A stretch of 64,000 nt of DNA from Eutreptiella sp. 'Long Island Sound 2002' (GCA_964036045.1 OZ038378.1:142910001-142974000); one strand, 5' to 3'; shown: positions 7,771 to 41,699, numbered from the stretch's first letter. Numbers and translations: made by a program. Notes: a model not told the origin generated them from the letters alone.

Positions 7771-8237
7771 CAGGGTGGGCGCCCGAAACCATGTGTCATC
7801 ATTATTGTGCTCCGATGTAGGCTGGTACGCCGTGCGGGGAGGGAGCGGGAGCGCCGCCGTTTGCGGGACCGGGCCTCGTCGCTTGAGTCGGGCCAGTCAG
7901 GAGGTGTCGGCGGGTCTTGGGGGGCCTCGCGTGGTGCCGGCTGGTACTGGGGGGGGGGGGGGAAGTCCCCCGCCCTCCATTGATCCGCCACGTAGGGGTG
8001 CGGTGGCGGCAGCGGCTGGTGGTACGGGTCGAGTGACTGTCCCTGGTGGGGTTGGGCCCGGGGGGCCCCTTCGGCGTGGACGTGGTGGCCGGGGGGATAC
8101 GGTGCCTGGTACGGGGGGGGTGGCTCCTGGTGGTAGGTTGGGTAAGGGGGTGGAGCGCCTGGTGGCTGCCATCCCATACGCTTCCCTTCTTCTTTTAGCA
8201 CCATGCCCCCTCTCCTCCTTTCGTTACCCATCATCAT
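7680..8237 (-). CDS. Pro/Tyr/His-rich ORF with basic RKRRRSRS motif (continuous only in unit 1)
   Basis: 185 aa ORF. In units 2-4 a poly-G length difference splits it into two frames. Confidence 0.35.
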   Translation of the reverse strand: MMMGNERRRGGMVLKEEGKRMGWQPPGAPPPYPTYHQEPPPPYQAPYPPGHHVHAEGAPRAQPHQGQSLDPYHQPLPPPHPYVADQWRAGDFPPPPQYQPAPREAPQDPPTPPDWPDSSDEARSRKRRRSRSLPARRTSLHRSTIMMTHGFGRPPWSCYSSLLRTTTGSLSALLDCRRSIPGGMK

Positions 8238-11200
8238 GGCATTAGCCCTCTGATAAGCAGCCCGGGCTGGACCAGTAGTGGCTTACACGAGCGGTGTTCG
8301 AAGGTTGCGCCTGGGGGACTACGCAACCGCGGGCATTTTTTTTGCATCAGAATTCCTAACTGCGGTTTCATTGGTCACCTTCCCCGCGCCCCCCAATCCA
8401 CGGTGTGACTTTAGGGTAGTCTCCGGTGCCGCGGCATTGTTTGAACAAGCTGCTAAGAAAAAAGAGGTTTCGGCCTGCTAACTCCTTGGGTTGGCACCCC
8501 ATTACCACACTTGGCTGTGCCACATCCCCATCCGGACTACTACCACCCTGCTTTGTAGCCACACCTTTGCCGTACCATAGGTGCGCATCACGGTTATAGC
8601 AGGAGGGTGAAGGACCCACAGAGCCCAATCCGGACCCACAGCTCTCGCCCCCCCCCAAAAGTGGACACCCTGGGCCTGCAATTGAAAAGACAAGTTGAGG
8701 GCCCCACATACAAGTAGTGACGCATTGTTAGTTATGTAGACTGTTACAGCGCAAATGTTCAAGTAGTGTTGTGTAGGGTAATCGCAATGCATGACATAGC
8801 GTTTCATAAGAGCCACTAACTATTTCGGGTGTTGTCATGTGTGAGCCCAACAAACAGATTTCTTCGCTGCAAGCACATCACTTTCACCAACTAGCTACGC
8901 CATCTGCTGGTGCCTCCAGTGCCCCCCTGGCACCTCCTTAGCCCAGCCCAATGCCCCCGGATTTTATGTGTAGACGTCCTGTGCCCCATTTCATTGAAAC
9001 CGGAGCATCACCTCAGTCATCATGTCAACGGGGAAGGGCCATGTACGATGCGGGTATGAAATTTATTTCTATACGCCTTGGACGAGGAAAATCTGTTTAA
9101 TGAGACACTTTTTGGCTTGAGGCGTGCCGTGATTCAATATTCTTTTGAATGCGACGGAAACAGACTGGGTTGACCGTAGCACAACGTGCCTCGTCAAACT
9201 CAAGATCATCACCCACTCCCCAAACTCCAACAGGTCAATGTGTCGGCCAATCCATCATCTCTTCTTGTACCCGTTGATGACCACCTGCTTAAACGGACAC
9301 CCAACCATCTTGCTAAGATCCATAGCGAGCAGCAGGACCAGGGTGGGCACCCGAAACCATGTGTTGTCGTTATTGTGCTCCGCTACATGGTAGCCTTCTC
9401 CTTTTACCACCATTCCCCTTCTCCTCCCCTTGTTACTCATCATCACGGCATCGGCCCTCTGATAGGCAGCCCGGGATGGACCAGTAGTGGCTGACAATGA
9501 CAATGGTGTGTGCCAATGCCGTTGAAGGTATGGGATTTGCAGAATCCATCCACCCGCCCCATTGTTGGTTTGTGGCAAGGGCAAGAAGTAGAAACGAGGA
9601 TTAAAGGAGAGGGCTGAAACTGAGTGTTTGTGTTCGGCGCATGCCGGGGAATTACCCGTGCGGAACATAAATGCGTCGCATTTGGGAGGCCACACATGTA
9701 ATCTCTGTGGGCCATTCGTCAACAACCCATGAATGGGCCGGCAAAGACGTTGTCACCTCTGTGTACCCCGCTTGGCTAATATGCATGGAACTTCGCAAAA
9801 GCTTGTGATGCCCCAAGAATACACAATGGAATCATGACATATTGCATGGCCACCCATTGCGAGGCTAAGAGCTGTCATTTCGCCCACAAACACACTTATG
9901 TTGTGTAGTCTCTTACATTTGACCCACTGGTTGGTGATGCGGTGAACGAAGTTCCCCGCGGGCTCCCATTGTTCCCCACCATGGCCTTGAAGCTTACCGC
10001 TCCACTTCATTACTTCATACCGCCCGGTATTGAACGCCGGCAGTCGAGTAATGCACTCAAAGACCCAGTGGTCGTCCTCAACAAAGACGAGTAGCAGGAC
10101 CAGGGTGGGCGCCCGAAACCATGTGTCATCATTATTGTGCTCCGATGTAGGCTGGTACGCCGTGCGGGGAGGGAGCGGGAGCGCCGCCGTTTGCGGGACC
10201 GGGCCTCGTCGCTTGAGTCGGGCCAGTCAGGAGGTGTCGGCGGGTCTTGGGGGGCCTCGCGTGGTGCCGGCTGGTACTGGGGGGGGGGGGGGGGGAGTCC
10301 CCCGCCCTCCATTGATCCGCCACGTAGGGGTGCGGTGGCGGCAGCGGCTGGTGGTACGGGTCGAGTGACTGTCCCTGGTGGGGTTGGGCCCGGGGGGCCC
10401 CTTCGGCGTGGACGTGGTGGCCGGGGGGATACGGTGCCTGGTACGGGGGGGGTGGCTCCTGGTGGTAGGTTGGGTAAGGGGGTGGAGCGCCTGGTGGCTG
10501 CCATCCCATACGCTTCCCTTCTTCTTTTAGCACCATGCCCCCTCTCCTCCTTTCGTTACCCATCATCATGGCATTAGCCCTCTGATAAGCAGCCCGGGCT
10601 GGACCAGTAGTGGCTTACACGAGCGGTGTTCGAAGGTTGCGCCTGGGGGACTACGCAACCGCGGGCATTTTTTTTGCATCAGAATTCCTAACTGCGGTTT
10701 CATTGGTCACCTTCCCCGCGCCCCCCAATCCACGGTGTGACTTTAGGGTAGTCTCCGGTGCCGCGGCATTGTTTGAACAAGCTGCTAAGAAAAAAGAGGT
10801 TTCGGCCTGCTAACTCCTTGGGTTGGCACCCCATTACCACACTTGGCTGTGCCACATCCCCATCCGGACTACTACCACCCTGCTTTGTAGCCACACCTTT
10901 GCCGTACCATAGGTGCGCATCACGGTTATAGCAGGAGGGTGAAGGACCCACAGAGCCCAATCCGGACCCACAGCTCTCGCCCCCCCCCAAAAGTGGACAC
11001 CCTGGGCCTGCAATTGAAAAGACAAGTTGAGGGCCCCACATACAAGTAGTGACGCATTGTTAGTTATGTAGACTGTTACAGCGCAAATGTTCAAGTAGTG
11101 TTGTGTAGGTTAATCGCAATGCATGACATAGCGTTTCATAAGAGCCACTAACTATTTCGGGTGTTGTCATGTGTGAGCCCAACAAACAGATTTCTTCGCT

Positions 11201-14200
11201 GCAAGCACATCACTTTCACCAACTAGCTACGCCATCTGCCGGTGCCTCCAGTGCCCCCCTGGCACCTCCTTAGCCCAGCCCAATGCCCCCGGATTTTATG
11301 TGTAGACGTCCTGTGCCCCATTTCATTGAAACCGGAGCATCACCCCAGTCATCATGTCAACGGGGAAGGGCCATGTACGATGCGGGTATGAAATTTATTT
11401 CTATACGCCTTGGACGAGGAAAATCTGTTTAATGAGACACTTTTTGGCTTGAGGCGTGCCGTGATTCAATATTCTTTTGAATGCGACGGAAACAGACTGG
11501 GTTGACCGTAGCACAACGTGCCTCGTCAAACTCAAGATCATCACCCACTCCCCAAACTCCAACAGGTCAATGTGTCGGCCAATCCATCATCTCTTCTTGT
11601 ACCCGTTGATGACCACCTGCTTAAACGGACACCCAACCATCTTGCTAAGATCCATAGCGAGCAGCAGGACCAGGGTGGGCACCCGAAACCATGTGTTGTC
11701 GTTATTGTGCTCCGCTACATGGTAGCCTTCTCCTTTTACCACCATTCCCCTTCTCCTCCCCTTGTTACTCATCATCACGGCATCGGCCCTCTGATATGCA
11801 GCCCGGGATGGACCAGTAGTGGCTGACAATGACAATGGTGTGTGCCAATGCCGTTGAAGGTATGGGATTTGCAGAATCCATCCACCCGCCCCATTGTTGG
11901 TTTGTGGCAAGGGCAAGAAGTAGAAACGAGGATTAAAGGAGAGGGCTGAAACTGAGTGTTTGTGTTCGGCATGAATAGTGTTGGGCCATGCATGCCGGGG
12001 AATTACCCGTGCGGAACATAAATGCGTCGCATTTGGGAGGCCACAAATGTAATCTCTGTGGGCCATTCGTCAACAACCCATGAATGGGCCGGCAAAGACG
12101 TTGTCACCTCTGTGTACCCCGCTTGGCTAATATGCATGGAACTTCGCAAAAGCTTGTGATGCCCCAAGAATACACAATGGAATCATGACATATTGCATGG
12201 CCACCCATTGCGAGGCTAAGAGCTGTCATTTCGCCCACAAACACACTTATGTTGTGTAGTCTCTTACATTTGACCCACTGGTTGGTGATGCGGTGAACGA
12301 AGTTCCCCGCGGGCTCCCATTGTTCCCCACCATGGCCTTGAAGCTTACCGCTCCACTTCATTACTTCATACCGCCCGGTATTGAACGCCGGCAGTCGAGT
12401 AATGCACTCAAAGACCCAGTGGTCGTCCTCAACAAAGACGAGTAGCAGGACCAGGGTGGGCGCCCGAAACCATGTGTCATCATTATTGTGCTCCGATGTA
12501 GGCTGGTACGCCGTGCGGGGAGGGAGCGGGAGCGCCGCCGTTTGCGGGACCGGGCCTCGTCGCTTGAGTCGGGCCAGTCAGGAGGTGTCGGCGGGTCTTG
12601 GGGGGCCTCGCGTGGTGCCGGCTGGTACTGGGGGGGGGGGGGGGAAGTCCCCCGCCCTCCATTGATCCGCCACGTAGGGGTGCGGTGGCGGCAGCGGCTG
12701 GTGGTACGGGTCGAGTGACTGTCCCTGGTGGGGTTGGGCCCGGGGGGCCCCTTCGGCGTGGACGTGGTGGCCGGGGGGATACGGTGCCTGGTACGGGGGG
12801 GGTGGCTCCTGGTGGTAGGTTGGGTAAGGGGGTGGAGCGCCTGGTGGCTGCCATCCCATACGCTTCCCTTCTTCTTTTAGCACCATGCCCCCTCTCCTCC
12901 TTTCGTTACCCATCATCATGGCATTAGCCCTCTGATAAGCAGCCCGGGCTGGACCAGTAGTGGCTTACACGAGCGGTGTTCGAAGGTTGCGCCTGGGGGA
13001 CTACGCAACCGCGGGCATTTTTTTTGCATCAGAATTCCTAACTGCGGTTTCATTGGTCACCTTCCCCGCGCCCCCCAATCCACGGTGTGACTTTAGGGTA
13101 GTCTCCGGTGCCGCGGCATTGTTTGAACAAGCTGCTAAGAAAAAAGAGGTTTCGGCCTGCTAACTCCTTGGGTTGGCACCCCATTACCACACTTGGCTGT
13201 GCCACATCCCCATCCGGACTACTACCACCCTGCTTTGTAGCCACACCTTTGCCGTACCATAGGTGCGCATCACGGTTATAGCAGGAGGGTGAAGGACCCA
13301 CAGAGCCCAATCCGGACCCACAGCTCTCGCCCCCCCCCCAAAAGTGGACACCCTGGGCCTGCAATTGAAAAGACAAGTTGAGGGCCCCACATACAAGTAG
13401 TGACGCATTGTTAGTTATGTAGACTGTTACAGCGCAAATGTTCAAGTAGTGTTGTGTAGGTTAATCGCAATGCATGACATAGCGTTTCATAAGAGCCACT
13501 AACTATTTCGGGTGTTGTCATGTGTGAGCCCAACAAACAGATTTCTTCGCTGCAAGCACATCACTTTCACCAACTAGCTACGCCATACGCCGGTGCCTCC
13601 AGTGCCCCCCTGGCACCTCCTTAGCCCAGCCCAATGCCCCCGGATTTTATGTGTAGACGTCCTGTGCCCCATTTCATTGAAACCGGAGCATCACCCCAGT
13701 CATCATGTCAACGGGGAAGGGCCATGTACGATGCGGGTATGAAATTTATTTCTATACGCCTTGGACGAGGAAAATCTGTTTAATCAGACACTTTTTGGCT
13801 TGAGGCGTGCCGTGATTCAATATTCTTTTGAATGCGACGGAAACAGACTGGGTTGACCGTAGCACAACGTGCCTCGTCAAACTCAAGATCATCACCCACT
13901 CCCCAAACTCCAACAGGTCAATGTGTCGGCCAATCCATCATCTCTTCTTGTACCCGTTGATGACCACCTGCTTAAACGGACACCCAACCATCTTGCTAAG
14001 ATCCATAGCGAGCAGCAGGACCAGGGTGGGCACCCGAAACCATGTGTTGTCGTTATTGTGCTCCGCTACATGGTAGCCTTCTCCTTTTACCACCATTCCC
14101 CTTCTCCTCCCCTTGTTACTCATCATCACGGCATCGGCCCTCTGATATGCAGCCCGGGATGGACCAGTAGTGGCTGACAATGACAATGGTGTGTGCCAAT

Positions 14201-34085: not shown

Positions 34086-35780
34086 GCGGTGGCAGCGACG
34101 GCGGCAGTGAAATGGTAGGAGGAATGAGGAGCGATGGCAGTAGGCGTTGGAACTCGACTTCTGTTAGCAGCATGGCGCAAGTGGACCGGTAGGCAGACCC
34201 TAGGCAGATGGGAGGGGTAATATGAGCACTTGCATTAGGGGGGGGCTGTGGGCTGGCAGAAAGCTGAGGTGGCACCAGGGGCGGGGAGGAAGAGATCGCG
34301 GGTGAGGCTTAAGGCGGCTTAGAGCCAGGCCGTAGCCTCCCCGTGTGATTTCAGGGGGGCCTGTGCTGTCGGCGGTGGTATCCGCCCCTCCCTGCGGGCC
34401 TTGCCGCAGGGCGCACACCTTATCGGCGGCTGCGCGCCAAGCCGCAGCCCCCTCCTGTGATTTCAGGAGGGCCGGGGCGGGGAGGTCGAGGACTCGGGTC
34501 GGACCGGGGCGGCAGGGGCCAGAACTCGTTGGTCTTCGGGGGTGTGGAGGCCCGATAGGCCCCAAAGCACGGAGAGGCGGCAGGGTCGGGCTCGAGCATG
34601 ATGGTCACCTTGCCCCGAGGAACTTGCATGGGCTGTGGGGATGGCCTCGGGTGAACCTCAGAGAGCCACCGGGGTCGCTTGTTGTAGCCCGGGGCGGCGT
34701 GGGGGTCATGGTGGTCGGAACATTTGACGCTCCTAGTGGCCTCCACCGTGAATTGCTTGCAAGGTCGGCTACCCCGTTCGGGACTAGCAGACCGAGACAG
34801 CTTCCGCTTCTGGTTGGTGGCAGACCGGGGCCGTTGCCTCTTTTGATTTTTTAGTTGATATTCTAGGTCTCGGACTTGATTTCGTAAGTGTTGGTTTTCC
34901 CTCTTGGTGGATTTGCGGGATGGTCTCGGGTGATGCGGTGGCGGGTAGCCTACTGGATGAGCAGCACAATATGGGGGCGGGAGGAGAGGAAACGGGGGCT
35001 ATGGGTACCCCATGGTCGGCATGGGGTAGTGGCCTAGGGGGGGGGCGTGGGGCGGCACCCATGGTGCTGGTAGCGGTAATCCGGTGCGGTCGGCGCATGG
35101 TGAGGGGCTGCGGCTCCGGGTGTCAGAGAAGGCATCTTGTGACGGAGTAGTTGTGTGTGACACGTCGGAGCGCGAGGGGGACGTTGATTGCCCAAGCGAC
35201 GAGGAGTCTGAGCTGCGTGGCATTATGGGTTGGGGCTGGTACAAAAGGGGACTCAGGATGGGGGAGGGGGTGCGGGGTCAGGATGGTCTGGGGGGAGGGG
35301 AACAGGGGGGCGAAAAAAATGTCGGATGTCAGGCGCGGGTTATGGGTTGGGTTGTGGGGGGGGAAGAGGGCGGAAATGGGTTGGTCTCGGAAAAAAGGCG
35401 GGGAGTCGGGCCTGTTTGTAGCGTTTTTCAGGGGGGACGCTGAGTTGTTGAGTCTGTGGACGAGGTGGGGGGGGGGGGGCGAAAGAAATGGTAGAGTGCG
35501 TCGCGCGGCGGGCGTTCTGGGGGGGGGTTTGGGCGTGGGCTTCTGTGGGAGTTTACCGGCTTGTTTGGGACTGGGCGTGGGTTTGCGGCCTGGTTTGTTG
35601 AAAGTTTTGAGTGGGGGGTGCACTGGCTTGGGCTTTGGTTTTGTTTTTGGTTTTGGTTTTGGTTTCGGCTTGGGTTGCACCGCCGACGGCAGCGGATCGC
35701 GTGGACGGTAAACAGGGGATGGGGAGGGGGCGGAAGGGGAAGAAGAGGTGCTGAAGGGGCCGTTTTTTATTCGCCAGGGG

Positions 35781-38700
35781 TTACGGGGGGTGAGCGGGAA
35801 GGCCATCTTGATGGGGTCCCAAGGAAGAGGATGGTCGCCCAACCATTCGAGTGCGCCGTAGATGGCCCGTTTTATCCCTGGGTGTCTGTTGATCAGCGCT
35901 TGCTTGAGCAATAGCATGTGGGCTGGCTTGGTCATGCCTGGCCGGGGAAATGAGAGGGAATGCCACAAGCTTTTTGGAACCAGTGTGCGAATAAAATGTA
36001 GGCCTCCGCCTTTTTTGGTGACGTGCCACCACTATTGTACGATCAACGTGAAGGGGAGGGGGCCAGGCCGCGACAAATGCTTGCGCGAGATGTTCCAGTG
36101 TAGGGCAGAGGGCGATGCACGAAAGGGCATCGTGGGGGTGTGGCGAACAGTGAATGCACTGGTAGTCGTGCAAGTTGTCTGGAAATTCATAGCCGTTAAC
36201 ACAGAGGTTGCCAGAACTGAATTTGAAGGGCATCCCAGAGAACCAGGAGGAAGAGGCATAGTAGTCGTAGCTGGGGGTGACAGCAATGTTGTGGTGCTCA
36301 TGACGTGGAAGGAGGTGGCGAAACCCGCGGATTTTGAGTTTGTGCAAGACGGGGAGGCCATGTTGGCTAAAAGTGCCGAGAGGGGGGGGGAGTAGTGATC
36401 TTTCGAAAACCAGGGAGAAGGCCCCCCAGTTCGCGTAGTCATCGGACACTTCGTTGCCCAAGAACCCCACGTGTCCTTTGATCCACGCTTGGTGTACATT
36501 CAGCTTACCACCATCTGCTAGGAGAAAAAGAAATGCTGCTGCCCAGGTGCCTGAAGGAAAATAGAAGTCTTCTGAGGGTGCGAGGATGACCCGAGTGATG
36601 AGGTCAACTATCTGGGAATTGTCGATGAGGAGGTCGATGCGGTGGTGGGGGCAGAGACGTCGGATGAGCTTTAACGCCATGCATGCTCCCCAGAACTCAG
36701 CGCCTGCCGAGGTAGGGAGGGGGTCGTTTGTACTAGGACGTAAGTGTGGCCCCCTGCGAGGAAGATTGTAACAGCCGCCGCATGCCCCACGTTTCCTGAC
36801 GAGCCGTCAGACTACACCCACACTGTATCATCATCGGAATCTTGCGTGAGAGCTGCGGCGGCAGTGCAGCCCCAGTTTGTGAGGTCAAACGCGCTAAGTG
36901 AGTGAGCTACGGTGACCAAGAAAAGGGGAACATGGATCGTAGTGTCCAGAAGAATGCAATCGTGGGGGGGAAGGGGGGCGTCACGGATGAGTTGCTCAGG
37001 GCGTAACAAAGTCGGAGATGAGATCTGGTGCGGCAGACGGGGGTATGGGTGATAGGTGTGGACCGGAAAATGTGATGTGAAGTTGGTGTCGTTGTTGATG
37101 GTGGCCGTTCCGTCGTGGAAGTGGAGGGTAGCAGTTTTGGATGCCGTGGAAGAGACGCCTCCAACGCATTGTCCGTGCTTCCGGTAGTGGACAACGAGGG
37201 TTTCGCCTGCTTGGAGGTGATGTACAGGTGTGTGCCGCCACACTCCCATAGAGTGGTAACTGAGATGCAGGAAATGAGCGCTGTCAATAATCATGTTTTG
37301 TAGGGGGTTGGGGGTATGCGAAAACAATAACGCAGTGACCGCTTCGGTGACCGCCGCCGGAGCTACTCTGGTGAGGCAGCGTATCGCTGAGTTGACAATC
37401 TGTATGTGGGCCATAATAGGGAGGAAGGATATTTCCAGACCACCTTGGGAGCGGGGGTGGGGGCGATCCATTGGAGATACTTTGGGGGTGATGGAGGATC
37501 GCTGAAGTGCTCTCCAAATATCCTTCTCAAAAAGGTTCAGGGTTTCGACAGGTAGGCAGTGCCCTAAGAGCTGGTACGCAATCATAGGGTGCAGTTGTTT
37601 GTTGACTAACCGAACTTTCTCTGACAGTGTCAGTGGTAGGGGGTCAATATTGGCGAAATAGGCCCTGATTTCGGCGCGCACGGCCGAAGTGAGCTTTTTG
37701 GACTTGTCTTGGGAATACAAATACACCCCGAGATATTTGTAGAAGTTGCGGGGGCGTCCCGTGTCGGGGTTGACGGTGGAAAAAATATGGTTGCGTGTGG
37801 TGAAAAAGTCACGTTGGGGGGAATTGCCGACGGCCTGAACCTCAGTTTTGGAGACATTCATATCAAGCCCCCAGACTCTAGCATTGTGATCAAATAAATT
37901 TAGTGTGGACTGGATGTGCTCAGGGTCTTCACTTTGAATAAGTATGTCATCTACGAAGACATGTTGTTTGGATGTCTTGTTGGGAGGGGGAGGGTGTGTA
38001 GCCATAAAGTGAGCGAGAAGAGCATTGAGGTATAAAATGAAGAGGAGGGGGGATAGGGGGCAGCCCTGGCGGACGCCTCGGCGTTGAAAGTATCGCACGG
38101 GTGTTTGCCCGTTAACAATGGGTGCGTCCACTCAGAGTACAGTAACTTGATGATGTCAGTTGTAGTTGTTGAGAAACCATTGTGTTCTAGCCCTTGGAAG
38201 GGCTCTCGGTGTGGTACCGAATTAAAGGCTTTGTTGAAGTCATTGTAGAGTGCATAGGAGCCTTTTACGTTGGCGTATTTCGCCTTGACATGGAGTATGT
38301 GGTCGTTGCATTGGGTTTTGCGCAACCCGTCGTCTTTGATGGAGAGGTGTACTTTGTGTTGGAGTGCTTGGTTTTGGAAGTGGCATGCTGTTTGGGCTGA
38401 TATTTTTTTATAAATTATGTTTAGTAGTGCTATGGGGCGATAGTTGAGTGGTTTCAACGGGTCTCCTTTCTTGTACAAAAGGCAAACTCAGGCGGTGAGC
38501 CATGTAGGGGGGAGCTCCCGGTGCAGGTAAACATTGGTGACAATCTAGAAAAAGCGCTTGACTGGCTGAGGGGATATGTGTAGGATGTAAGAGGAGGAGT
38601 AGTCGTCCCCTCCCGCTTTGGTGGGCTTTTCATGGTGAAGAAAAGAGGTGTAATCTTTCCATTCTATATGGGAGACGGGGGTGTCGCGGGCAGCGCTAGG

Positions 38701-40369
38701 GCATTGGGGGGTATGTGCTAGCACTTTAGACACGAAGGATGTATGAGGGTGGTAATCGGGGTCGCCTCCCAAGTGTGGTAGGGTGTGGGCAAAGGCTTGG
38801 GCCACGTCTTTGGGGGAGTTCAGGGTGAGGGATGGATTGTTGGGGTCGCGGACGACCATGGGCTGAGGCTCCGGGCGTTGCAAGGCCGCGAAGACTGAAC
38901 GCTTGAGAGATGTGCCCGAGATCATACTTCGGTGGAGGGCCGAGACGGCCTTCCGTTCGGTGTGTTCGTTGAGGGAATTGGACATGTCTTGAATTTTACG
39001 CATATGTGGCTGGAAGCCCTTGTTGTCCGGGGGAGGGATGGACCGAAGGAGTGTGGCTAGGGCATGCTTCCTTTTGTTGGTCTTTGTGTCTGGGGAGGGG
39101 CTAGTGATGGAGTGGTAGGCCCGGGTGAGTTGCTGAAGAACGGAGGCAACCGCCTTTTCTAGCTCTCCGGGGGGTGGCTGCTGCTAGAGAGGAGGAGGCC
39201 GATGAGCAGCAGTTTGCTAAAAAAGAGACTTGTTTTGTGAACGTTTCCATTTTTTGGGGCTTCAGGGCACGGAACACCATGGGTGGTGGTGGGGGGGTTG
39301 GAAGGAGGATGGGCGAGGGAAACTGGAGGGAGGTTGTGATGGGGTGATGATCGAAGAAGGTGTGGTCCCGCAGGACCGACGCCTCTTTGATGGGCAGGGC
39401 CCGGTGCATGTATAAGGAGGCAAAGATGTCGTCCAATCGGGCCGAGATATCCCAGTACTCCGTTCTATACCGTTTGAAGACGCGGCTGTGATGATGCAGG
39501 TGCCTATAAGAGTCAACTGAATAGGGCGGACAGGTGGAAGAATGGCCAGTGAGCCATTTCCATGTGTGGTCACTTGTCAAACCTTCGGAGTCCATTGACG
39601 GGTCAAGCACTGCATTAAAATCACCGCCAAGTAGGTGGAGGGGGTATTTGGCCGCAAGGCGGGGGAGGAGCGCTTCCAGGGTGTCACGGTAGATTGCGGG
39701 GTCAGTGGGTCTGTGGGGGGGGCAGTAGACGGACGCTATAGCCAGGGTGGGAAGCCCCGGAGGGGTGACGGTGCATGCAGCTAGTAGCCCATGGGCGTCT
39801 TTGAAAGCGGGCAAGGGCTGCGAGTAGCGGCTTAGGGACGGGCCGACCACCACTGCTGCGCCGCGGGCTCGTCCTGTGCTATTGTGGTAAATGCAGACGC
39901 GGTCCATGCCCGAAGCGAACACCATTGGTACTTAGGGTGGGAAATTCAATTCTTGACAAAGTATGATGTCATACACCTATGCTTTCTTTGGAATATTTGC
40001 TTTTACGAAAATTGATTGATATGACCCGAAGCATTGTGAGTGGGGGGGCAGGGGAAGTGATGGGTCGCTGGTACTGCTTTCTAGCTTTGAACCGCACAGG
40101 AGGCCGAGAGAGGGGGGCAGGAGTAGCGGGCTGAAGATATTTGTCCAATGCACCCCATGGTCGAGGGAGGAAGACTGGTGGTGAGGACTCAAAGGGCAGA
40201 GGGCGGGGAGGGGATCCAGCGCGACGTTTATCTGGCTCTGGCGGGGGGAGGGCAATGTTGGGGTGATGTATTTTGGAGAATGGAGCGTGGTGATCTCATC
40301 TGTGTGCACGCCAAGGTTAGCTAGCCTAGATTGGAGGGAGGGAGCCATGCAGGCGAAAAGGAACTTCAT
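35781..40369 (-). pseudogene. LINE-A ORF2 (APE endonuclease, RT, RNase H, C-terminal Cys/His knuckle) with stops and frameshifts
   Basis: APE: DIILCQE, GGDFNA, RLDDIF, DHHPI. RT: YKKGD.....NYRPIAL, DFNKAFNSV, GVRQGCPLSP, FVDD, YKYLGV. RNase H: DGSSG, SAGAEFWG, DNS, WIKGHVGFLGNEVSD. Knuckle: CIHC...H....C. Confidence 0.95.
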
Positions 40370-41007
40370 GGCTGCTCAAGCGGGGAAGGACTGGGATGTT
40401 CAGGGAAGGGGGGATCCACGCTGCGTACAACCATGCTCCACCTAGCGTCCCGAGGGCATTTGAGGCCGTCATGTAAATCGTGGTCCCGAGCCGCAACGGC
40501 GTGGCTCCATTGGTGTCGAGACTCTCCTTTGAGCAAGAGCAGAGATGCCGGCCAAAGGAAAAAGGACCAATCGGGGGGCGAGTCCAGCGGCATTTTGTGC
40601 TTGTGCATGTCGAAATTACAGGTGGAACCCCAAGAAAAAATTCCTACCCACGAACCTAACCGTTTTTTTTCAGTGTGGTATCCGATTCCCGACGGTTCCG
40701 GTTTGACGGGATAGAAATTGACCGAGACCTGGTTCGGGTAGGCAAGAAAAGGGTCTATTTGCAGGGACTTGGCGTGTGCGACGCCGAAAAGGGGTTGGAA
40801 AACGGGAGGAATGGGTGTGGTCGGGGTGATGTGCTCGGAGTTTGGGTCATAGGAGAACCCATAATGTATTGTGGTGCGGGGTCCAATGTGTCTCATCGTT
40901 TCCTTCCGCACTGCAGACACGATGGACTCTAGTACGGATCCGCTTACGGCGTCTTCAACGTAGTGGACTCCTGGCGGGCATACTGATGGCGGGTCGAGCA
41001 GAGACAT
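40366..41007 (-). CDS. AlkB-family 2OG-Fe(II) dioxygenase, intact, directly upstream of LINE-A ORF2
   Basis: Motifs HYGFSY, NQVSVNFY, GIGYHTE (Hx[D/E]), RHQWSHAV (distal His) and RWSMVVR. Its TGA overlaps the ORF2 ATG (ATGA at 40369-40366). Confidence 0.9.
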   Translation of the reverse strand: MSLLDPPSVCPPGVHYVEDAVSGSVLESIVSAVRKETMRHIGPRTTIHYGFSYDPNSEHITPTTPIPPVFQPLFGVAHAKSLQIDPFLAYPNQVSVNFYPVKPEPSGIGYHTEKKRLGSWVGIFSWGSTCNFDMHKHKMPLDSPPDWSFFLWPASLLLLKGESRHQWSHAVAARDHDLHDGLKCPRDARWSMVVRSVDPPFPEHPSPSPLEQP

Positions 41008-41699
41008 CTTTTCCGTGGTGTTCAGCTCTTTCGCGCGCGCCTCGTAGTGTTGGTGTATGCGGCCGTTCCTCCCCTTAGTCTAGCTCCCTCCGCGTTGCCT
41101 TACCTTTTTTACCCGTATTGCTGTTTTTCTTTGCTGTGTTCGTGGCTCTTTGTTTCTTTTGGTTTTCTTAGGTTTGTCTTTTCGATACCGTGCTGTCCTC
41201 CGTTGACCTCCCCCTGTCCGTTTCGCACCGCTCCGCCGACCTCCTGTCGCAAAACGAAGACAAAGCAAAGCTGCATAGGCACAATTCGCCGGGGTCTCTC
41301 ACATCATGCTCTGGGTTCACCTCTTGCTCCCGGAACGTGAACTTGAACCCAAGACCCCACAAAGTGGTGCCTGGCTGGTTGGCCTCTAGCACTTGTACCC
41401 CGTAGCGCCGAAAAGCGCTGGGGGTGCACGTCGCTGTTGTCGTTGGATGGAAATGCGGACGTTGTCCCGCATATGAGCTGGGTTGCCGTGCCGCTATGCT
41501 GCTGGCCCGATGTGTGACAGCTGCGGGCTTTATATACTCTAAGCTGATTGACTGAGTGGTGGGGAGGGCAAGCTTCGAGGCTAGCTGCCCGGACAGCGCG
41601 ATGATCTGCCCGCGTTACGGGCCACTGTCACCGTCTCCGGCGTTCGCCCCTCGGTGTTGTCCTCTGCGGCGGCGCTCTGGGCAGCCCCGTACTCTCCTT

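Follow-up and report, generated by a model that had tools for sequence, protein, structure and literature searches.

An AlkB-type dioxygenase domain at the C-terminus of ORF1 in divergent LINE families of a euglenid

Introduction

The closest described counterparts of the element presented here are Ty3/Gypsy LTR retrotransposons of Phalaenopsis, which encode an ALKBH5-like AlkB domain with demonstrated m6A demethylase activity, whose proposed target is either the RNA of the element itself or that of the cell (PMC9289625). In these plant elements the domain, a member of the ALKBH5/9B/10B branch of m6A erasers, occupies an additional ORF and was acquired recently in a single lineage; the likeness to our locus lies in a retrotransposon-encoded AlkB-family dioxygenase with conserved cofactor ligands (PMC9289625). 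In contrast, the element described here is a non-LTR element of a euglenid, in which the AlkB domain is fused to the C-terminus of ORF1p and falls in the ALKBH8/ALKBH6/Ofd2 branch, and the association is older, being common to families about 30% identical. A second parallel is offered by plant RNA viruses (Flexiviridae and their relatives), whose replicase polyproteins contain an AlkB domain thought to remove methyl lesions from the viral RNA. Both cases represent selfish RNA-based replicators with an AlkB of their own; however, the viruses have no reverse transcription step and embed the domain in the replicase, unlike a LINE.

Among LINEs, an ORF1 upstream of an ORF2 with apurinic endonuclease (APE) and reverse transcriptase (RT) domains is shared with L1, with its RRM-containing ORF1, and with CR1/L2-like elements, and an enzyme-like domain in ORF1 has a precedent in the esterase-type ORF1 of the latter. 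The ORF1 described here differs from these in its size (~1,100 aa) and in that its enzyme domain is a dioxygenase; moreover, Pfam detects neither an RRM nor a CCHC motif or coiled coil in it. The ingi and L1Tc elements of trypanosomatids likewise reside in euglenozoan hosts and show the order APE-RT-RNase H followed by a C-terminal Cys/His motif; to our knowledge, they have a single ORF and no AlkB domain. Our literature search turned up no account of an AlkB domain in a LINE. The reading that we favor, with a probability of roughly 0.6 for its parts taken jointly, is that of a truncated copy of a LINE with an ORF1-AlkB fusion, whose AlkB domain would act on the element's RNA and whose ORF2 would be translated by coupling at an AUGA.

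A decayed LINE copy and its relatives

The window, a stretch of 64,000 nucleotides of the Eutreptiella genome, contains at 34186-41062 (minus strand, as are all features below) a dead, 5'-truncated copy of an old, low-copy LINE, which we term family A. Its borders emerge from blastn comparisons with nine other family A copies: the 5' border falls at 41062 in seven and at 41060 in two, and a 3' border at 34186-34188 is common to three, giving an element of 6.9 kb; the extent of 35781-41007 assigned by the first-pass annotation was thus too small. The ~14 loci of family A are dispersed over nine chromosome-scale contigs and show the common 3' end and variable 5' truncation of a LINE. No poly(A) tail was seen and no target-site duplication is evident in the window copy. 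Its 3' part (34186-35780), which comprises the end of ORF2 and/or the 3' UTR and includes a Pro/Lys-rich stretch of low complexity, is 77-82% homologous with three other copies (L040, L044, and L045) down to 34186, and a Pfam search of its translation returned no domain.

The order in full-length elements is ORF1, ATGA, and an ORF2 with AP endonuclease, RT, and RNase H. Family B is a younger sister of 9.1 kb whose copies are ~97% identical; its ORF1 of 1,134-1,156 aa ends in a PF13532 domain, and APE, RT, and RNase H lie downstream. The 3' end of family B is A8, one copy shows a long flank duplication, and one (L031) is truncated relative to two others (L032 and L033). Each of the families B', C, and D has an AlkB domain as well, and all of them share a homologous ORF1 core.

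The AlkB domain and its potential target

The AlkB-type 2OG/Fe(II) dioxygenase domain (40366-41007) is the C-terminal part of ORF1; the 213-aa ORF that the first-pass annotation reported is this domain, read in the window from what is an internal Met. The HMMER search for 2OG-FeII_Oxy_2 that it called for yields a clear PF13532 match (47.9 bits, above the cutoff of 31.2; E=2.4e-12), and the family B ORF1s score 38-39 bits against the same profile. An AF2 model of the domain (pLDDT 90.3) adopts the double-stranded beta-helix fold of solved AlkB homologues: Foldseek against the PDB gives 474 matches at E<=0.001, the best 50 of which are all AlkB homologues, with ALKBH6 (7vjs; TM 0.73/0.76) first and ALKBH6, Ofd2, and ALKBH8 forming the top group. 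In profile searches, the AlkB domain of ALKBH8 scores best (E=6.3e-16), followed by Ofd2 and ALKBH6, whereas ALKBH5 reaches only E ~0.02 and also ranks below these three by fold. These values speak against membership in the ALKBH5/FTO branch: the nearest relatives of the domain are human ALKBH8 and ALKBH6 and Schizosaccharomyces pombe Ofd2, rather than the m6A erasers ALKBH5 and FTO, and the earlier label of an RNA demethylase is not supported. Identity to the three relatives is only 21-26%. The likeness to ALKBH8 may extend to an RRM-like fold just upstream of the AlkB domain, as modeled in ORF1; however, the methyltransferase domain that completes the RRM-AlkB-methyltransferase architecture of ALKBH8 is absent, and the domain differs further in belonging to a LINE ORF1p and to a separate clade.

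We propose that ORF1p would coat the element's own RNA, possibly via RRM-like folds in its core, and would thereby place the dioxygenase onto that RNA. The enzyme would then oxidise a base modification, in our preferred version N-methyl lesions or marks such as m1A or m3C, which stall the reverse transcriptase; a host-imposed mark would be an alternative target. Target-primed reverse transcription would thereby start from a cleaned template. Erasing a mark is not automatically good for a LINE, since in human L1 m6A promotes retrotransposition and ALKBH5 suppresses it (PMC7873242).

An active domain might instead be directed at a target other than RNA, either DNA (for instance N6-methyladenine or alkyl lesions, in cDNA or target-site DNA) or a protein (such as a chromatin or host restriction factor), an unlikely reading in our view, albeit one that retains real weight. 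According to a preprint, Euglena chromatin is heavily marked by 5mC and also has 6mA at promoters, and DNA methyltransferases are encoded by other Euglena retroelements (10.64898/2026.05.21.726589). DNA 6mA demethylases of the AlkB family, such as NMAD-1, are among the fold matches listed. Further, none of the nearest relatives of solved structure is an established repair enzyme or m6A demethylase, and we know of no established RNA demethylase activity for the closest structures, ALKBH6, Ofd2, and ALKBH7. Methylated LINE RNA need not be the target, which could also be DNA or a protein. On the other hand, the placement of the domain at the end of ORF1p, a protein that coats RNA in other LINEs, suggests RNA, as do the tentative RRM-like folds of ORF1, and ALKBH8, which matches best by sequence, is an RNA-directed enzyme that hydroxylates the wobble uridine of tRNA.

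The predicted iron- and cofactor-binding residues are the iron motif H111-T-E113 (CAC ACT GAA; 40669-40677) and, within 40423-40503, the second iron ligand H169 (40503-40501) and the 2OG-binding R189 (40443-40441) and R195 (40425-40423). In an alignment of 75 homologues, H111, H169, R189, and R195 are invariant and position 113 is nearly always D. The nine other family A copies have HTD (seven), HTN (one), or HTG (one), so that the HxD...H iron triad takes the form HTD...H in this family, and the HTE of the window is a conservative private change; the HxE motif singled out by the first-pass annotation is thus genuine for this copy but is no trait of the family. Family A also has the 2OG Arg pair R-x5-R (R189 and R195) together with the N-x-Y motif (N97 and Y99). 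In family B, the HVD, the second His, and the R..R pair are intact in all 12 young copies sampled, and the 2OG-stabilising N-x-Y reads ARY, with the Asn lost. L051, the single copy seen of another family, has HLE. Across every family compared, the iron and 2OG ligands are retained, the exceptions being the third motif position in single copies. The loss of the Asn in family B and the HxE, HxN, or HxG of single copies could be taken to mean that the AlkB fold was kept as a non-catalytic module of ORF1p for nucleic-acid binding or scaffolding. We consider such a pseudo-enzyme improbable: families only ~30% identical have all kept the iron ligands and the two 2OG arginines without change, the young copies are uniformly intact, and the motif variants sit in dead copies.

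AlkB as the C-terminal domain of a large ORF1

The AlkB domain is the C-terminal domain of an ORF1 of ~900-1,150 aa and not a replacement for ORF1. Sequence 5' of window position 41062 is present in eight other family A copies, in which the AlkB frame remains open for hundreds of codons; L035, L036, L037, and L042 each have at least 200 further open codons in this frame beyond 41062. The window frame is itself open right from the truncation point, and 41008-41062, upstream of the internal Met, is accordingly a coding remnant of ORF1 and not a 5' UTR. At least 2.8 kb is missing from the 5' side of the window copy, and the rest of ORF1 is absent from the whole 64-kb window. It is this truncation at 41062 that explains both why no ORF1 is seen upstream in the window and why a 213-aa ORF reads from an internal Met. 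The earlier observation that no nucleic-acid-chaperone ORF1 precedes the AlkB ORF therefore holds within the window but fails in other copies, where the frame continues upstream.

The first-pass annotation had placed an AlkB alone in the ORF1 position, and the window ORF does have an ATG start, is intact, and directly precedes ORF2. A compact LINE with a stand-alone 213-aa AlkB of the HxE type, acting as an m6A-type RNA demethylase, is nevertheless very improbable: the eight other copies have a longer open ORF1 frame, the presumed initiator Met is a Val in families B and B', HTD is the motif in seven of the nine other family A copies even if the single L051 copy also has an HxE (HLE), and the profile scores (ALKBH5 at E ~0.02 versus 6e-16 for ALKBH8) speak against an m6A-type demethylase.

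The large ORF1 comprises a variable acidic or Ser/Pro-rich N-terminus, a ~600-aa core conserved between families, and the C-terminal AlkB domain. Outside the last, Pfam searches recovered no RRM, CCHC, or coiled coil, even at E<=10. The AF2 model of the core is poor (mean pLDDT 52) and contains two segments of beta-alpha-beta-beta-alpha-beta order, both matched best by RRMs. In two aligners these segments match mostly RRM domains, at Z 5.8-7.4, below 8 and from a poor model; human L1 ORF1p (2w7a) is among the fold matches of the core at Z 6.5, with the same pLDDT of 52. Foldseek gave no match to the core at E<=0.001, its RRM matches having E>=0.02. We tentatively suggest that the ORF1 core holds RRM-like folds.

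Distribution, origin, and selection

At least five divergent LINE families have an ORF1 with an AlkB domain, and the 2.28-Gb host genome contains more than 1,500 candidate loci, which sit in long LINE ORF1 frames. The AlkB domains of different families share only ~30% identity with invariant ligands and form one clade (SH-aLRT 96), outside which lie two candidate host genes of the same broad subgroup, L050 and L052, the latter with an upstream RRM-like exon. The tree against host ALKBH genes suggested by the first-pass annotation thus returns the LINE AlkBs as monophyletic and apart from these two genes. In the comparison of dN/dS that it also proposed, the family A AlkB has a value of 0.34 in frame, versus 1.10 and 1.58 in the shifted frames; the values across copies are 0.39 for RT and 0.49 for APE. 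The AlkB frame has been under purifying selection. The domain belongs to the retrotransposon, as had been claimed, given that all 10 family A copies have the same junction and that the domain is present in at least five families; the AlkB-LINE pairing is genuine, old, and under selection. A host ALKBH gene whose processed copy or fragment came to lie beside a LINE, as an alternative source of the AlkB ORF, is refuted by the comparison of copies. Although L050 and L052 show that related AlkB-type genes exist in the host, the AlkB/ORF2 junction recurs at different chromosomal sites, the candidate loci lie in LINE ORF1 frames, and the LINE AlkBs form a clade of their own.

The ORF1/ORF2 junction and ORF2

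The ATGA overlap at 40366-40369, in which the ORF1 stop TGA (40368-40366) overlaps the ORF2 start ATG (40369-40367), is present in the window as first described, and the proposed survey of copies found it conserved, with AlkB always upstream, in the 10 family A copies. The ATGA does provide the start of ORF2: from its ATG, the frame continues without a stop into the APE domain in L034, L038, and L041. ATGA overlaps are also found in families B, B', and a D-like family (L054); in B and B' a short ORFx precedes ORF2, and the ATGA lies at the ORFx/ORF2 junction, in the ORFx stop. From the conserved overlap, termination-reinitiation may reasonably be inferred: ribosomes would terminate at the UGA of the AUGA and reinitiate at the overlapping AUG, which would keep ORF2p scarce and coupled to ORF1p synthesis. 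A comparable case is the UAAUG stop-start overlap that couples ORF1 and ORF2 in SART1 (Kojima et al. 2005, as reviewed in PMC3894237), where stop and start likewise overlap and no spacer separates the two ORFs. Unlike SART1, the LINEs described here use AUGA rather than UAAUG, a search for conserved RNA structure downstream of the ATGA found none, and families B and B' add ORFx.

The frame that follows the ATG was said to lead into an APE domain, and APE, RT, and RNase H pieces do lie downstream, spread over several frames, with the combination of APE and RT, here also with RNase H, that marks an APE-type non-LTR retrotransposon. The N-terminal region of ORF2 (39977-40369) is broken by two frame changes and stops, as seen in a three-frame comparison with intact copies; by eye, its start (...SRLANLGVH...) resembles that of family B (...EVLARVGVH...). 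The AP-endonuclease domain (39101-39925) gives weak matches (Exo_endo_phos_2, E=8.9e-4; Exo_endo_phos, E=0.011), its family B counterpart reaching E=1.5e-9 in Pfam. The RT (36812-38478) is split over two frames (37951-38478 and 36812-38131; RVT_1, E=4.4e-8 and 1.8e-16) and is followed at 35781-36680 by an RNase H remnant (Pfam RNase_H, E=0.072, versus 3.8e-6 for the family B ORF2) with a Cys/His motif (CIHC...H...C).

The contrast drawn by the first-pass annotation between an intact AlkB and a broken ORF2 is accurate as to ORF2, which has two frame changes and two stops in its first ~190 codons and roughly six frame changes over its whole length in the window. The intactness of the AlkB, on the other hand, is unremarkable: ORF2 is ~7 times as long, so that roughly 0.7 lesions would be expected in an AlkB-sized segment, and the intact 639-nt (0.64-kb) frame is within chance. 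L034 is likewise stop-free over the aligned part of its AlkB segment.

LINE families whose ORF1 ends in an AlkB domain

The Euglena genome from which the window derives harbors a real and, to our knowledge, hitherto unpublished lineage of LINEs whose ORF1 ends in a conserved AlkB dioxygenase. A search of this genome (2.28 Gb in 2,317 contigs) with the AlkB ORF of the window recovered 1,554 first-look candidates. About 14 of these loci belong to family A, the old low-copy family of the window element, with 65-86% identity to the window's AlkB ORF; the remaining candidates show about 36% identity and lie within frames that are open over as many as 1,282 aa. The younger and more abundant sister family, family B, has a 9.1-kb element that starts with GAGCGCCGTCC…, 44 nt upstream of the ORF1 ATG, and this leader is followed by an ORF1 of 1,134-1,156 aa and then by the APE, RT, and RNase H domains of ORF2. 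The PF13532 domain makes up the last ~200 aa of this ORF1, and the spliced leader is absent from the 5' end of the element. One protein cluster of family B has 113 members by itself, and the three copies compared (L031-L033) are ~97% identical. This young family may still be active; among the copies compared, we found neither a family A ORF1 that is both full-length and intact nor an undamaged family B ORF2.

An ORF1 ending in AlkB, with RT or RNase H ORFs after it, is also seen in family B' (P0018/L047), which is 53% identical to B, in family C (P0031/P0176 and L049), and in family D (L051 and P0060/L054). Families A, B, C, and D have homologous ORF1 cores (residues ~370-1110 in family B); thus, the entire ORF1, beyond the AlkB domain alone, has co-evolved with these LINEs. 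A search of ORF2 by sequence found no relatives in the PDB. The LINE-type ORF1 relatives recovered by word-index search all come from one ENA assembly, presumably that of this organism. Outside Euglena, the matches examined in a full HMMER scan of representatives are ordinary AlkB proteins, ALKBH8-like fusions, or a giant-virus-like GT90-AlkB fusion, and a metagenome scan with the ORF1 core, which reaches close relatives only, gave no match.

Certain copies lie in repetitive surroundings. The family D ORF1 at L051 (G000:C2:190329921-190333694, minus strand), a single sampled copy, has H-L-E as its iron motif. A long tandem repeat whose units encode (A/T)PAPVRN flanks this copy. A tandem repeat of ~175 bp, with units 85-86% identical, lies directly upstream of the 5'-truncated family A copy L036 (L036:1-663; G000:C15:19508387-19509049). 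The 5'-truncated family B copy L031 (G000:C18:3440544-3450543) sits between direct repeats that are 98.9% identical (reverse-complement coordinates 1168-1346 and 9822-10000). Sequence that begins 283 bp before the 5' junction recurs in its 3' flank; this looks like a target-site duplication of ~280 bp (179 bp visible), the insertion having hit the RT region of another LINE.

Fold, cofactor ligands, and selection

The AlphaFold2 model of the window ORF, built on a 75-sequence alignment, has a mean pLDDT of 90.3. Foldseek searches with this model yielded 474 matches in the PDB (E<=0.001); every one of the 50 listed is an AlkB homologue, and the best among the matches listed are ALKBH6 (7vjs, TM 0.73/0.76), Schizosaccharomyces pombe Ofd2, and the RRM/AlkB structure of ALKBH8. 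A profile of the LINE domains finds ALKBH8 (E=6.3e-16), followed by Ofd2, ALKBH6, and ALKBH7, with ALKBH2, ALKBH3, and ALKBH5 at E-values around 0.003-0.03.

The cofactor ligands are conserved in the LINE AlkB domains: H111, H169, R189, and R195 (window numbering) occupy invariant columns in the alignment of 75 homologues, and D113, N97, and Y99 nearly invariant ones. In family B, all 12 sampled copies retain HVD, the second His, and both Arg residues, and have no stops. The HxE iron motif noted in the first-pass annotation does not extend to the family: the window copy has HTE, and the nine other family A copies have HTD (seven), HTN (one), or HTG (one). By this comparison, the Glu is a private substitution of a dead copy.

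The AlkB frame is under purifying selection, with a median pairwise dN/dS of 0.34 among family A copies versus 1.10 and 1.58 when that alignment is read in the two shifted frames. For RT and APE in ORF2, the values are comparable, 0.39 and 0.49; hence, during the diversification of the family, AlkB was as constrained as the replication enzymes. The intactness of the AlkB frame in the window copy, to which meaning had initially been attached, is itself uninformative because L034, another family A copy, is likewise stop-free over the aligned AlkB part, and the lesion density of the ~7-fold longer ORF2 predicts ~0.7 lesions at that length.

The ORF1 core and the possible role of the dioxygenase

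For the ~900 residues that precede AlkB, Pfam offers no match even at a threshold of E<=10, and an ESM Atlas feature search with the ORF1 core produced no usable lead. The AlphaFold2 model of the conserved core is poor (mean pLDDT 52) and contains two beta-alpha-beta-beta-alpha-beta segments, the better of which has a pLDDT of ~76-87 and lies at most ~120 residues from the AlkB domain. Exhaustive structural alignment of both segments retrieves mostly RRM domains (Z 5.8-7.4), and the matches include the RRM of human L1 ORF1p (2w7a, Z 6.5) and tandem-RRM proteins that cover both segments. The weak top matches from Foldseek (E>=0.02) are nearly all RRMs. As a lead from this model, the core may be an RRM-like, RNA-binding module, in which case its order relative to AlkB would recall ALKBH8, minus the methyltransferase of the latter.

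The boldest reading, to which we give a probability of roughly 0.35, is that a Euglena LINE lineage with more than 1,500 candidate loci, and with a young family that is perhaps active, fused a catalytically competent AlkB to an RNA-coating ORF1, and uses it to erase RT-blocking or host-imposed marks from its own template RNA prior to copying, the domain having been acquired once and kept through deep divergence. The ORF1 protein would bind the RNA of the element and thereby carry the dioxygenase onto it, where the enzyme would oxidize a base modification; as its target, we prefer N-methyl lesions or marks that stall reverse transcription. Stalling by such marks is the property exploited when tRNA is pretreated with AlkB before sequencing. 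This target is put forward tentatively since the closest relatives are ALKBH8, ALKBH6, and Ofd2 rather than ALKBH5, FTO, or the repair enzymes. A target in DNA (6mA or alkyl lesions) or in protein strikes us as unlikely, though well short of negligible. One study on human L1 reports that m6A aids retrotransposition and that ALKBH5 suppresses it (PMC7873242), which cautions against presuming an anti-m6A role.

If this reading of template demodification is correct, these elements would represent a non-LTR retrotransposon with a built-in epitranscriptomic eraser. Were the domain to clean or unmark the template, base modification of retrotransposon RNA would constitute a selective barrier strong enough for domain capture. 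The AlkB-ORF1 protein might also supply a natural RNA-binding AlkB fusion for RNA sequencing based on reverse transcription.

Plant RNA viruses are known to carry AlkB enzymes, and both retroelement-encoded AlkB and LINE ORF1 proteins with an accessory enzyme domain have precedents. In our searches of the full-text literature, no report of an AlkB domain turned up for any non-LTR element or for Euglena transposons. Ty3/Gypsy elements of Phalaenopsis carry an ALKBH5-like AlkB ORF that is an active m6A demethylase (PMC9289625); however, this is one LTR-retrotransposon lineage of an orchid, whereas in Euglena the element is a LINE and AlkB is fused to ORF1p. A 2026 preprint describes adenine and cytosine DNA methyltransferases in Euglena LTR/DIRS elements, and AlkB goes unmentioned there. 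What the present case adds is an AlkB fusion that selection has maintained while the LINEs diversified deeply, these elements being very abundant in the genome.

Origin of the LINE AlkB domain

The architecture of the elements is accompanied by a single clade of their AlkB domains (SH-aLRT 96) in a maximum-likelihood tree of 141 domains, comprising six from LINEs, two from candidate host genes (L050 and L052, for which the query was ALKBH8-like), and 133 representatives from an exhaustive HMMER scan. Two further members of this clade are P0060, a Euglena LINE fragment, and P0172, a cellular gene from a different eukaryote; the two host candidates lie outside it. As the tree is unrooted and comes from a quick LG+G4 search without named ALKBH references, it displays clustering and no donor. 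Within these bounds, it indicates a single old capture of AlkB, followed by diversification to ~30% identity. The first-pass annotation had named a merely adjacent, recent processed copy of a host ALKBH gene as one finding that would refute its proposal. The placement of L050 and L052 argues against such a copy, and together with the co-linearity of the copies, it leads us to reject a host ALKBH pseudogene or processed copy adjoining the LINE.

The host candidates themselves differ in architecture. L052 (G000:C8:12911939-12915547) has an RRM-like exon (…YAIVEFIDHKTARRAV…) upstream of its AlkB exon, as in ALKBH8, and then a long Thr/Ala/Asn repeat. In L050 (G000:C18:32590473-32593985), a frame of 572 aa has a canonical AlkB domain at its end and lies beside Cys/Val-rich tandem repeats. 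The search output for both lacked a methyltransferase domain. A further fusion, in which a glycosyltransferase family 90 domain precedes a C-terminal AlkB, is encoded by a 1,227-aa gene (8001-11684) of the metagenomic locus L048 (JGI metagenome 3300050184, contig Ga0502760_0000889). Its contig is gene-dense, and the neighbors (DUF4379, methyltransferases, a cysteine peptidase, and a thioredoxin) look giant-virus-like.

The window copy

The 213-aa AlkB-type ORF first noticed at 40366-41007 (minus strand, as are all features of this element) is confirmed by a match to Pfam 2OG-FeII_Oxy_2 (PF13532; E=2.4e-12), whose 47.9 bits exceed the curated cutoff of 31.2. Its TGA does overlap a downstream ATG, as an ATGA at 40369-40366. 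The remains of ORF2 comprise weak AP-endonuclease matches (39101-39925), reverse transcriptase pieces in different frames (37951-38478 and 36812-38131), and what is left of RNase H (35781-36680). Toward the 3' end of the element, a frame of 281 aa that includes a (K/T)P repeat (…KPKPKPKPKTKPKPKP…; 35123-35968) is open; it has no domain match and is possibly an ORF2 tail or non-coding. ORF2 is broken, as had been noted, with two frame changes and two stops in its first ~190 codons and ~6 frame changes overall.

Comparison by blastn with nine other genomic copies places the 3' end of the family at 34186-34188 and shows the window copy to stop at 41062 on its 5' side, or at 41060 by two of the nine. 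Eight other family A copies carry on at this 5' limit, with ~60 nt conserved among them that are missing from the window, and their upstream homology extends at least 2.8 kb farther. In four of them (L035, L036, L037, and L042) the AlkB frame is open for at least 200 codons upstream of the apparent start Met, L035 has an additional 433-aa frame upstream, and that Met is a Val in the sister families. Because other copies continue upstream with an open frame and the window holds none of that part, the window copy reads as a 5'-truncated, dead member of an old LINE family, and its 213-aa ORF as the C-terminal domain of a far longer ORF1, read from an internal Met. The missing upstream ORF1 is a trait of this copy and not of the element, which corrects the annotation from a minimal element with a stand-alone AlkB ORF1 to a truncated, dead copy. 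Displacement of the rest of ORF1 by an insertion is rejected, as the upstream part has no blastn or tblastn match anywhere in the 64-kb window.

The stop-start junction before ORF2

Within family A, every one of the 10 copies carries the ATGA in the same context (CAGCCATGAAGT). In L034, L038, and L041, the frame opened by the ATG runs stop-free into the endonuclease domain, which identifies this ATG as the start of ORF2. In the family D-like L054, ORF1 ends in …ATA TGA and the next ORF begins at the overlapping ATG. Families B and B' have TAA or TAG as the ORF1 stop and a short intervening frame, ORFx, of 114 and 214 aa, respectively (in B', L047:11311-11955), whose ATG precedes that stop by 14 and 41 nt. 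ORFx in turn ends in an ATGA whose ATG opens ORF2 (MRRCQEVLARVGVH… and MRTCAGVLARLGV…), and these ORF2 starts are similar by eye to that of family A (…SRLANLGVH…). As ATGA precedes ORF2 in families A, B, and B' and in the D-like element, a stop-start overlap directly before ORF2 is conserved across families sharing about half or fewer of their residues. The putative ORFx of family B has the motif AACATGAGACG at either end, which gives the impression of a duplicated junction.

Such an overlap would fit termination-reinitiation of ORF2, by analogy with SART1, for which this mechanism was demonstrated (Kojima et al. 2005, as recounted in the review PMC3894237); the overlap is UAAUG in SART1, whereas it is ATGA in these Euglena LINEs. 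Over five ranges downstream of the ATGA, that of L034 being off register, no RNA structure proved to be conserved: the consensus has an energy of -3.1 kcal/mol and no covariation.

Dispersed spliced-leader sequences

One family A copy has its AlkB split into residues 1-64 and 91-213, which lie 9.4 kb apart (L021/L060, G000:C2:98916965-98920156, and L012, C2:98926604-98929975). A spliced-leader core is found at position 1835 of L021, ~140 nt past the break in AlkB and at the start of the intervening DNA, so that the split looks like a nested insertion of an element headed by the spliced leader. In the genome as a whole, TTTCTGAGTGTCTATTTTTTTTCG, which we take to be the spliced-leader sequence of Euglena gracilis, occurs 5,458 times on both strands (e.g., C1:29492-29515), with no occurrence of the reversed control, which marks the genome as that of a Euglena. 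The copies are dispersed along the chromosomes, being far more scattered than expected from a tandem array of SL-RNA genes, which suggests retroposed RNAs bearing the spliced leader or elements that start with it.
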